A stretch of 64,000 nt of DNA from positions 186,001 through 250,000 of the forward strand of contig CBFDEM010000038.1 in NCBI GenBank assembly GCA_965603825.1, read 5' to 3'. Both the position numbers and the translations under genes were made by a program. This stretch comes from Blepharisma stoltei ATCC 30299. Its lineage: Eukaryota; Protista; Ciliophora. The notes beneath the pieces are model-generated. The model saw only the letters and a program-made list of their open reading frames with translations, made no database searches and had not been told where the DNA came from. Shown in pieces: positions 22,983 through 26,948 of the stretch (its first letter is position 1; every line of letters starts with the position of its first letter).

Positions 22983-23678
22983 TTATTCAACGATATCATT
23001 AACTTCATCAGTAGGGTCTTCTTCACCGTTCTCTTGAGGCTCGTCATCTCTCAATTTATTTTCGACTTCCTCCCATTTTTCCTCACACACGCGCTCAGCG
23101 CCTTCTTTTTTCTTGCAAAGATAAACCCAATGAGGGTTTGTGGTTTCTTCCCCAATAATCTGATTAGAAACGTCCCATAGTAAATGCTCCATCTCAAAAT
23201 GCTCAAGTCTAGACTCAGGCGCTCCATACGAAATTGCCATATAAAATCCATCAGTTTTCAAAACCCTTTGAATTTCTTTAGTCATTCTTGCGACATTTAA
23301 ATAAGCATCATCTCCACATAGTAAAGCGTCTATTGTAGATTTGTCAATGGCCAAATCAAATGTATTACTTGGGAATTTTATGTCTCTGACATCCTGGACA
23401 CTCCAAGTCATGGTAGGCTTGTCAATGTTTCTTTCTGCCATTTGCTTGATAACGACACTGGAGATGTCAATATTATCGATATTTTGGAAGCCGTCATGAT
23501 ACATATCTTCACCTAATTCTGCGTTGCCACACCCTAAAATCAAGATTTTTGCAGTCTTAGGAGCTATTTCATTGATTATAGGGGCAAGGCTGCGATAGTC
23601 TTCAAGCCAGTCAAATGTAGAGCCTTCTTGTTCAGCATAGCGCTTTTCCCAGTATTCCGGGTCACCGTAATTAGGCAT
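22983..23678 (-). CDS. SAM-dependent protein-lysine methyltransferase, EEF1AKMT4/METTL13-N-like
   Basis: YGDPEYWEKRY, FDWL, ILILGCGN, IDKSTIDALLCG, RVLKTDG. Confidence 0.85.
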   Translation of the reverse strand: MPNYGDPEYWEKRYAEQEGSTFDWLEDYRSLAPIINEIAPKTAKILILGCGNAELGEDMYHDGFQNIDNIDISSVVIKQMAERNIDKPTMTWSVQDVRDIKFPSNTFDLAIDKSTIDALLCGDDAYLNVARMTKEIQRVLKTDGFYMAISYGAPESRLEHFEMEHLLWDVSNQIIGEETTNPHWVYLCKKKEGAERVCEEKWEEVENKLRDDEPQENGEEDPTDEVNDIVE

Positions 23679-23703
23679 TTAATGGATTTTTAAGGATTAT
23701 ATT

Positions 23704-24219
23704 ATGGAGAGTGAAGAGGATAAGGAAATTATTAATATTGGGAGAATGGCACTTTCTGCGAGGGTTTATCCTGAGCATATAATTGAGGAAATAAAAGTGA
23801 TGAAAAGTACAAAAGGAATAATTTTATATGGAGACGGGATTAATTATAAAGTTGTAGGGGATAAGCTTGCAAAAAAATGACATGATATAACTGTTGTTAA
23901 AATTATTAATGGTTTAGATGTTTATAATGAAAATTTTGAGCAACAAATTTTGATGATTTTTCATGATGCGGAAAATGACCAAAGATTACAGGATTGAAGA
24001 AACCTTCATATCATTGTTATTGGCCATTTTGAAGCTATTTTTGGAGCTAATAATAGTGAATTAGAAGCTGAGAAAATTGCTAAAAATTTAATTATCTTGA
24101 AGCAAGAGGAACTAGATAATATTTTGATTGTTGGTATAGTAAATAATAAAAATGATATTGATGAAAACATTTTAACACAAGGTAAATTTGATGTGGAAAT
24201 AGAATTTGGAGCTTCATAA
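23704..24219 (+). CDS. Stand-alone degenerate NSF/Sec18 D1 AAA-like protein, 171 aa (absent from the ORF track)
   Basis: Open ATG-to-TAA frame with two TGA=Trp. It is colinear with NSF D1: ALSARVYPEHII, KGIILYG, KIINGLDVYN, IFHDAENDQR, LHIIVIGHFEAI, LDNILIVGIVN, IDENILTQGKFDVEIEFG. Confidence 0.8.
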
Positions 24220-24384: not shown

Positions 24385-25029
24385 ATGAGCACAATTAAAA
24401 CTTCAAAGTCTGGCATAACATACACAAAAAGAAAAACGAGATCAAAAACTGTAAAATTTGAAAAAACTCCTAAAAAATCGGAAGGCAAGCGTACTGGATT
24501 TGAGCGTTCCAATACTTTAGAACAAGGATCAGACATAACGAACTCTTTTGATCTTTCTCACGATGCAATCAGCAAGGATGATTGGAAAACTCAGTCTATG
24601 ATGCATGAAGACGTGGAAAGATCTTTTGATTCCATCAATTTCGATATGGCAAAATCGTTTGAATTGGAAAATGGTCATACTTTTGAAGGGCACAAAGAAA
24701 GTGAAAGCGAAAATTCGCACAACGAAAAATACGAAGAAAATAAAATTTCTTTAGAAAATGTTATCCAAGAAAGCCAAGAAGACGAAAATCAGCTAAAAGA
24801 AGAGGTCAAGGAAAATCCAATAATCCCGTTAGAAAAAGAAAATAATTTTAAAATCGAAATTAAAGAAGAACCAAAACTTAAATCAAACAAAGAAAATAAT
24901 GAGGCTGTTAAAAATGCTTCTGAAACCAAGCCTAAAGAAGGAAAAAGCTCCAAAGTTATATATGGAGTCGCTATTGGTGCATTAGTATTACTAGGGATTG
25001 GGATTATTTATATTAGAAACAAGAAATAA
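24385..25029 (+). CDS. Probable tail-anchored membrane protein, 214 aa
   Basis: Charged body, single C-terminal hydrophobic helix VIYGVAIGALVLLGIGIIYI followed by RNKK. Confidence 0.75.
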   Translation: MSTIKTSKSGITYTKRKTRSKTVKFEKTPKKSEGKRTGFERSNTLEQGSDITNSFDLSHDAISKDDWKTQSMMHEDVERSFDSINFDMAKSFELENGHTFEGHKESESENSHNEKYEENKISLENVIQESQEDENQLKEEVKENPIIPLEKENNFKIEIKEEPKLKSNKENNEAVKNASETKPKEGKSSKVIYGVAIGALVLLGIGIIYIRNKK

Positions 25030-25046: not shown

Positions 25047-26948
25047 TTATCTCAAGCTTAATTCATCATCTTTAAATTGTCCTATCGTATTGACATATTT
25101 TAGATCCCTCAAAAGCTCATCATTACTTTTATTCTTCATTTCTTGTAACAGTCATCTTCTCGAAGTAGTTTTAACAATAAACCTTATCATCTCCATCCCA
25201 GCTACCTTACAAACATAAATTAAATGGCTGCAAGCTATCCCATATCTCATTATTTTTTCACACGTGCAATAGCTATTTTCTCAGTCAACTTGATAATTTT
25301 TTATATTTTTTGTGGATTTTTGATCTTCTACAACTAAAATTTCTTTGTCGCCATCACTATCTATACTACAAAACTCAATATCTCTTATTGAGCTTAAGAT
25401 ATGTAAAATGCAATAAGATTCGTAAATGTATTGGATACCATTTATATTTTTCAGTAAACTGTTTATCATATTTGTAGAGCTCTTCATAGATAAATTTTTC
25501 ACACATAAATCTTCTTTATTTGATACTGAAACTTCTTCAAGATAAGAAAAAATTTGAAAAATTTGGTTTCTTTTGATTAGTTTTGTGAGCTTTCTTAGTA
25601 TTTTTTCGATGTTATTTAGCCTATTTTTGGAATCTAAGCCAGCTGTGAAATGTTTTTTTACTGAAAATTTAGTCCAGGATTCTAAGTCTAGCATTAACCT
25701 GGAAATTTCATGGTTTTTCTCTAATTCAGGATAATCATTTAATAGCGAGGAATATTTTTGTATCATTTCATTGTGATTTTCAGACTCATATATAGATAGA
25801 AATCGGTCCTTTATGATGCTTCACTCATGTATTAGCATTAATTTTAACCTTTTTTCAATATGATGAAAGCTGAGTATAATATTTGATTCTGGGAAATTCT
25901 CCAGCAAAGCTTCATGTTCTATTGGATTTGAGGTAGCCAAAATAGTTTTTGGGTTTCTAAATCCTTGCTCTCTAAAGCAATTAAATGATCACCCAAAATT
26001 TTCTTTGGCTTCTACTTTTATTAGAGCCATTGCTATCAAATTATTAATCCCATTAGAATCCACAGTAAAAAAAGTCAAACAGCAGCTATAGTATGGGTGT
26101 ATTTGAAATGAACTTTCTATAAGGATTATATCTCCCAGCCTGTTTCAGATTTCTACTTTTCTAGCAGTAGTGACAAATAATTTATTCCCGCCTGGATCTT
26201 TTATTGATATAGTGTCCTCCTCCATAAAATTATAATGTAAAATATCCTCAATTTCTGACGACGCATGCTGCGAATGTCCTTGGTATTTACTTTGCAAAAA
26301 ATATCTCAGCTTATTTTCATTTATAATGATATTTGGGTATTTTTGGGTTAAAATTTTATAGACTTGCCTAAATGTGAGACCAGTTGAAAACAGTTGAACA
26401 GCGTTATCTTTTATTGATCTTGGCAAATAAGTACATTGGGCCATGCTTTCTATATGTTCATTAGAAATTTTTGCATGATTATGATATGGGTAAATCTCTC
26501 CACAGCAATATTCTATACTATCAGGCACTGCATAGCTTACCAATCATTTCATTATAAACTTGCATGGAGTTTCTGGGGTAATTTTAGGAAATTTGTTCAT
26601 TTGACGAATTCGTGAAAAATAGCATGCCCATTCAATTCGTCTTTTATTAGAGCGCTGGCAACGAATAATAGTTTTGTCTTTTTGTAAGAATTCGTTGACA
26701 AGGTCAGATTTGAATTCTTCACGATTTTTCTTTTTAATTGTAGAGCCTTCAGAGTAAAGGTGAGAAATGTAGCCATCACTAAAATCTTCTTCAAATGCTG
26801 AAATTTCGTTTGTAAGGAAAGGCCGCTTTGTGAGGAGGTTAAAACTGTCAGATGGCTCATCGAAAGAAGATTTGAGATCATATTTCGAATTTACGGGGTA
26901 GTTATAAATGCGGAATCTTTGTGATGATGAATCTGCATTATCAAGCAT
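25047..26948 (-). CDS. Domesticated Mutator/MULE (FAR1/FHY3-like) transposase derivative: WRKY/GCM1-like Zn finger, degenerate MULE DDE domain, SWIM; 633 aa
   Basis: One frame through six TGA (26544, 26145, 25989, 25821, 25281, 25152) to TAA 25047. Motifs: WAC...PCKF...HNH; GDIILIESSF...FFTVDSNG...IAMALI..E..ENFGWSF...PKTILA...NFPESNIILSFHHI; FTAGLDSKNR; CTCEKIMRYGIACSH; RRW. Confidence 0.82.

Follow-up and report, generated by a model that had tools for sequence, protein, structure and literature searches.

The window analyzed here, a stretch of 64,000 nucleotides, comprises positions 186001-250000 of contig 38 in the Blepharisma stoltei genome (41.46 Mb, 64 contigs). It contains an intronless open reading frame of 171 codons, two of which are TGA, that encodes the large subdomain of the D1 domain of NSF and nothing else (Table 1). 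In B. stoltei, UGA specifies tryptophan and introns are mostly 15-16 nt long (10.1101/2021.12.14.471607), and in-frame TGA codons are present in further genes of the window. With UGA read as tryptophan, the translated frame is identical to a 171-aa protein (P0002) in NCBI, UniRef and nr, for which a gene call exists on the B. stoltei assembly GCA_914767885.1. The preliminary description of this DNA had proposed that the frame is real despite its two UGA codons, which is borne out by the code and by the identical database protein, but it also called the gene unannotated, whereas the gene is absent only from the program-made ORF track. That the ORF does not encode a protein, either because the TGA codons are stops or because the frame arose by chance, is hardly credible: neither TGA falls at a conserved tryptophan column, but UGA is read as tryptophan across the whole genome, the paralog on contig 32 has sense codons at both sites, and homology is colinear over all three pieces delimited by the TGA codons. 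A hidden tiny intron that would lengthen the frame was considered and rejected.

In the MAC+IES assembly, which represents the same B. stoltei genome as the window and is not independent of it, a 132-bp IES, bounded by TA and containing in-frame stops, splits the gene; in the somatic sequence it is excised precisely. It is one of six IESs in about 6.6 kb of that assembly. The part of the expression table covered here comprises genes whose induction at 26 h of conjugation exceeds about 6.3-fold. No Contig_38.g139x gene, the estimated number of the window gene, occurs among them, which hints, as far as the estimated number holds, that the window gene is not strongly induced at that time.

Table 1. 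Features of the dead NSF-D1 locus in the window and of its paralog on contig 32
Feature	Position	Strand	Remark
NSF D1 large (alpha/beta) subdomain-only ORF	23704..24219	+	ATG at 23704, TAA at 24217-24219; equals database protein P0002; Pfam AAA match; fold models
NSF-type helix alpha0, KG loop, strand 1	23713..23832	+	best-kept surface segment, profile ratio 0.38
Remodelled P-loop, residues 43-50	23830..23853	+	G-x-G-[IL]-N-Y, common to the contig-32 copy
TGA codon 59	23878..23880	+	read as Trp
TA junction of 132-bp germline IES	23888..23889	.	interrupts the window gene in the MAC+IES assembly
Pore loop 1 region	23923..23937	+	YVG deleted
TGA codon 98	23995..23997	+	read as Trp
Strand 3, kept	24010..24027	+	Walker B DE changed to GH
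Sensor-1 Asn, N147	24142..24144	+	kept
Second region of homology (SRH)	24157..24186	+	Arg fingers replaced by Thr158 and Lys161; both Arg present in the contig-32 copy
Methyltransferase gene	22983..23678	-	head to head with the window ORF; missing from the contig-32 block
Downstream gene with C-terminal hydrophobic tail	24385..25029	+	synteny marker; a paralog also follows the contig-32 copy
MULE-domain gene	25047-26948	-	633 aa, six TGA codons; missing from the contig-32 block
Dead NSF-D1 paralog	contig 32, ~352838-353376 (L004:4839-5377)		174-codon open frame, no TGA, no gene call

The derivation from NSF rests on several kinds of search. The window protein scores 30.3 bits against the Pfam AAA model (cut-off 21.2), the last piece of the ORF taken alone has Sec18 as its best sequence match among solved structures (PDB), and in a search of its own genome only the paralog and NSF match strongly (E 8e-23), the next AAA protein following at 4e-3. 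The homology to NSF/Sec18 D1 noticed in the preliminary description thus lies well beyond chance, at an identity to the host NSF D1 of 33%. In phylogenetic trees the window protein falls within the NSF side of a branch with a support of 100 that separates it from the other AAA domains of the host, although its own branch is very long. A profile and structure search, which had been proposed as a check, returned NSF/Sec18 and classical AAA domains (p97) as best matches. The protein's own model in the Atlas (pTM 0.78) superimposes over its whole length on NSF clusters with TM values of 0.74-0.76. AlphaFold2 guided by an NSF alignment, which biases the model, yielded a pLDDT of 84 and NSF/Sec18 as the top Foldseek match; AlphaFold2 from the single sequence gave no usable fold (pLDDT 34). 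In a broad structural search several classical AAA domains were tied, with p97 at Z 17.5 and Sec18 at Z 16.3, the latter with the highest identity (29%). Sequence, Foldseek and trees therefore agree in placing the protein with the D1 domain of the NSF clade.

D1 without a canonical D2 also characterizes "type 2" NSF-like proteins, which giant viruses and Chlamydiae encode (PMC9546365), and the fragment could in principle be a domesticated gene of that kind instead of a piece of host NSF. The host NSF ranks just 56th among the NSF representatives by pair-HMM score, in a set biased by having been picked by similarity to the paralog. However, the two fragment copies group apart from the chlamydial-type sequences, the AU test does not reject a clade that joins them to host NSF (p 0.87, in a tree limited by long branches), no relative was found among the viral contigs searched, and the type 2 proteins carry an N-terminal extension, missing here, and seemingly intact active sites. 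Such an origin is therefore quite improbable. When matches to the paralog were ranked by summed score, and only then, the first was a 1504-aa Waddliaceae protein (P0001) that contains two NSF-like domains, of which the second is partly degenerate.

With NSF/Sec18 D1 (PF00004) the window protein shares the NSF-specific helix alpha0 and the helix-2 extension, but at 171 residues compared to 726 it lacks the N domain, the lid and D2, and it has lost the Walker A and B motifs, the pore loops, the ISS and the Arg fingers. The frame ends at the boundary between the large and the small subdomain, and neither the somatic nor the germline-inclusive flanking sequence contains remnants of an N domain, a lid or D2, so that the earlier statement on the missing N and D2 domains and on the end of the ORF holds for both the flanks and the alignment. 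Walker A reads GDGINYKV; its Gly and Thr residues are gone and a lysine (K49) is kept at the position of the Walker A Lys. With a P-loop remodelled in this way, normal binding of phosphate and Mg would, we infer, not be possible. The preliminary description had listed Walker A, Walker B, the YVG pore loop and both Arg fingers as lost. This is correct for the Walker A Gly/Thr, the Walker B DE, YVG and both Arg fingers, which correspond to R385 and R388 of mammalian NSF (PMC6160233), but K49 and the sensor-1 Asn remain.

The parental fold is thus predicted to be retained (Atlas pTM 0.78, alignment-guided AlphaFold2 pLDDT 84) while the catalytic residues are lost, a combination typical of a pseudo-ATPase whose inactivity is predicted from sequence. 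An AAA+ large subdomain that lacks the lid, the P-loop and the pore loop is incapable of normal ATP binding, ring closure and translocation, and without the helical lid and D2 neither a ring nor translocation of a substrate is possible. The architecture accordingly makes it very unlikely that the window protein acts as a hexamer that disassembles SNAREs with SNAP.

The genome contains a second copy of the fragment on contig 32, which went unnoticed in the preliminary description, and no third copy at a detectable level in the B. stoltei genome search. The two copies are 34-35% identical, end at the same C-terminal column and have 28 residues in common that are absent from host NSF, among them the P-loop G-x-G-[IL]-N-Y. 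The contig-32 copy has kept both Arg fingers and the DG of the ISS. The frame of this copy breaks near codon 7, within an A-run, which puts its ATG out of frame; the cause may be a frameshift of recent date, an indel in the A-run due to assembly or a rare 17-nt intron. A 379-bp IES lies in this copy at 353000, and its ends resemble terminal inverted repeats.

The contig-32 copy is embedded in a collinear block of paralogs, in which a kinase, a kinesin, the upstream gene, the tail-anchored-like gene, an EF-hand gene and others follow one another in the same order as in the window, at identities of 40-96%. The flanking pairs have a dS of approximately 2-9, mostly 2-4. The block extends over positions 5687-44000 of the window and 337000-378000 of contig 32. 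Proteasome ATPases, alpha-SNAP and many other genes are likewise paired in the genome, and together with the block this suggests that the whole genome, or a large segment of it, was duplicated long ago in Blepharisma. Because the truncation, the P-loop and the end column are shared by the two fragments, truncation and catalytic loss predate the duplication of the block.

Three genes of the window, encoding a BART protein, the methyltransferase and the MULE-domain protein, left no tblastn trace in the contig-32 block. The start codons of the methyltransferase gene and the window gene are only 25 bp apart (23679-23703), as compared to roughly 270-720 bp between the other head-to-head pairs of the window. 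The contig-32 paralog of the downstream gene (L004:5574-6806) encodes an acidic protein of 410 aa that ends in a hydrophobic tail and contains an array of 7-residue repeats, an array that the window gene lacks.

The existence of two old copies permits a distinction between selection and decay. The pair has a dN of about 0.7 and a saturated dS. A codon-model likelihood ratio test gave p ~1e-11, a value inflated by the protein-guided alignment. Since neutral simulations likewise place codon position 2 above position 3, reliance was placed on the stop counts, the conservation of the core and an internal control, namely the three neighbors missing from the contig-32 block. No stop occurs in the 343 codons of the two copies, as against 18-24 in neutral simulations at this depth, and a single neutral copy would be free of stops with a probability of no more than 0.0005 once 0.5 substitutions per site have accumulated. 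When the NSF columns are compared, hydrophobic core positions have stayed hydrophobic in 49/58 and 48/58 cases in the two copies, in line with the earlier remark that structural residues are kept, whereas only 8/25 and 9/25 of the invariant polar residues persist. The paralog comparison, with zero stops, a preserved core and lost catalytic residues, supports the earlier view of a selected pseudo-ATPase rather than a decaying pseudogene: purifying selection has acted on the fragment as a protein since the duplication, and over most of that time, to judge from these sequence patterns, it would have been for a folded product. The fragment nevertheless evolves fast, with 35% identity between its copies and 34-96% in the flanking pairs.

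An alternative is a once-functional gene that is now relaxing. According to this scenario selection held for most of the time since the duplication and lapsed recently, the contig-32 copy is broken and the window copy is intact because little time has passed. The displaced ATG and the missing gene call on contig 32 would fit, as would the low GC3 of the two copies (0.19 and 0.16, against 0.31 for NSF) and the loss from the window copy of Arg fingers that its paralog retains. Against it, the break on contig 32 could be nothing but the A-run indel or the rare intron, and a neutral copy stays free of stops with a probability of 0.26 at 0.05 substitutions per site and of 0.08 at 0.1; any lapse must therefore be very recent. 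Selection may have lapsed during the most recent 0.05-0.1 substitutions per site, but as an account of the locus this is unlikely, at about one chance in five.

Relatives of the fragment outside B. stoltei did not emerge. Word-seeded protein searches with both copies found no orthologue, in a method so insensitive that the two copies, at 35% identity, missed each other. HMMER with the paralog against 1.84 billion representatives returned, among the best 150 matches, the window protein as the sole short and dead one. No orthologue was found in metagenome and viral contigs or in the Atlas, and a synteny search with the BART neighbor in other contigs gave neither a conserved gene order nor a match. 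A transcriptome of B. japonicum contains the neighbors and not the window protein, an absence that carries no information if the standard code was used for its translation, in which case the pieces are each shorter than 100 aa. So far the fragment is known from the B. stoltei genome only. In the literature searched, which covered few subscription papers, no dead mini-protein or pseudo-ATPase derived from NSF has been described. The earlier assertion that no equivalent is described stands in this respect for NSF, but not for the architecture, since a lid-less AAA alpha/beta domain that binds no nucleotide is known from LAP1/LULL1 (PMC5425593).

What might such a protein do? Both copies were scored segment by segment against an NSF profile, with segments assigned to faces according to the AAA+ fold and not from measured contacts. 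Strands 1, 3 and 4 are kept in both (ratios 0.63-1.06) and helix alpha0 is partly kept (0.38 in the window copy, 0.33 in the contig-32 copy). The SRH is weak (0.12 and 0.17), and helix 3 with the ISS is negative in both copies (-0.43), as are Walker A, Walker B, the sensor-1 loop and pore loop 2. Within the data set, the sequence closest to the host NSF D1 is 86% identical to it. A partner conserved to the degree of NSF D1 would be expected to fix the surface that binds it, yet helix 3/ISS has drifted, which favors a new partner. Moreover, NSF is single-copy in the host genome whereas the dead D1 fragment has been kept twice, which favors a module that has left the NSF ring.

In the model that we prefer, a selected, lineage-restricted dead NSF fragment, present in two old copies, would serve as a monomeric binding module with a new partner; from the sequence comparisons we give this a probability of about 0.45. 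The sequence comparisons support a course in which a partial duplicate of NSF retained only the large subdomain of D1, with loss of ATP binding and of the grip on substrate, and was then duplicated again along with its chromosomal block, both copies remaining under purifying selection for the fold. The window protein would most likely be monomeric and non-catalytic, and its new partner would probably be bound through surfaces that are common to both copies and absent from NSF. Candidate surfaces are the remodelled P-loop, the aromatic residues that follow Walker B and the end of helix 2 with its N-D-x-R, although the residues common to both copies may serve only to stabilize the fold. If the protein binds a partner other than NSF, it would show, in a clean and datable example, how an enzyme fragment becomes a binding module.

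The preliminary description suggested that the protein might belong to the NSF hexamer as a subunit that caps or inhibits it. This is possible, yet the conservation pattern, with a negative helix 3/ISS and a weak SRH, does not speak for it. In its most concrete form the protein would be a one-sided regulator of NSF that docks with alpha0 and the SRH on the nucleotide face exposed at the D1 seam, ends the ring because it has neither lid nor nucleotide site, and thereby caps, opens or tunes the motor that disassembles SNAREs, in the manner of LAP1. LAP1 and LULL1, which have neither ATP motifs nor a four-helix bundle, contribute an Arg finger to Torsin and destabilize Torsin rings (PMC5425593, PMC5638581). 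The same subtraction is seen in the window protein, the D1 ring of NSF is split (PMC6160233), alpha0 is the best-kept surface in both copies, and the contig-32 copy has its two Arg fingers as well as the DG of the ISS. The window copy, however, has neither an Arg finger nor the ISS, helix 3/ISS is negative in both copies, and the fragment was kept in two copies, NSF in one. NSF, moreover, supplies its own Arg fingers, and its ring is held together mainly by D2, which the window protein lacks. We therefore favor the new-partner module, with a LAP1-like cap next in rank, level with recent relaxation, and like it rather improbable. A dedicated dead NSF-D1 subunit that sits at the seam of the D1 ring and controls SNARE recycling in LAP1 style, possibly as a set with an N-domain-only NSF copy, would be marginally less probable still.

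LAP1/LULL1 acting on Torsin would nevertheless be the closest working analogue. The likeness is a degenerate AAA+ alpha/beta scaffold devoid of ATP motifs and four-helix bundle (PMC5425593); the differences are that the proteins are not homologous at the family level, that the window protein is soluble and has no membrane anchor, and that the conserved catalytic Arg, which these cofactors donate in trans, is absent from the window copy (Thr/Lys), both Arg being present only in the contig-32 copy. Binding to an ATPase is hypothetical in the present case, and LAP1 was not among the best 50 structural matches of the window protein. The clamp-loader subunit delta prime, an inactive AAA+ subunit of a hetero-oligomer (PMC5425593), resembles the window protein in being a dead AAA+ module that is retained for its contacts with other proteins but differs from it in the lid, which the window protein lacks. 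Because only one genome is involved, the fragment evolves fast and the function is predicted only, the value of the case is limited. Inactive AAA+ subunits such as delta prime keep the lid and are stoichiometric members of their rings. NSF is the universal recycler of SNAREs, and if it were bound, the fragment would be a natural ring-capping reagent, in parallel to Torsin and LAP1.

The N-domain-only NSF copy is an intact ORF of 188 aa, called as a gene, on the minus strand of contig 17 at about 152488-153054 (L005:6489-7055). It is a tandem duplicate that lies upstream of the only full-length NSF gene, at a distance of about 870 bp; to that gene it is 57% identical with a dS of approximately 0.8-1.0 and an omega of about 0.4, which makes it much younger than the D1 fragments; it could be a SNAP-binding decoy. 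In addition, a divergent tandem duplicate of alpha-SNAP (L054/L057) adjoins a canonical copy on the minus strand of contig 60 at about 382322-383177, and the breaks in its frame resemble tiny introns.
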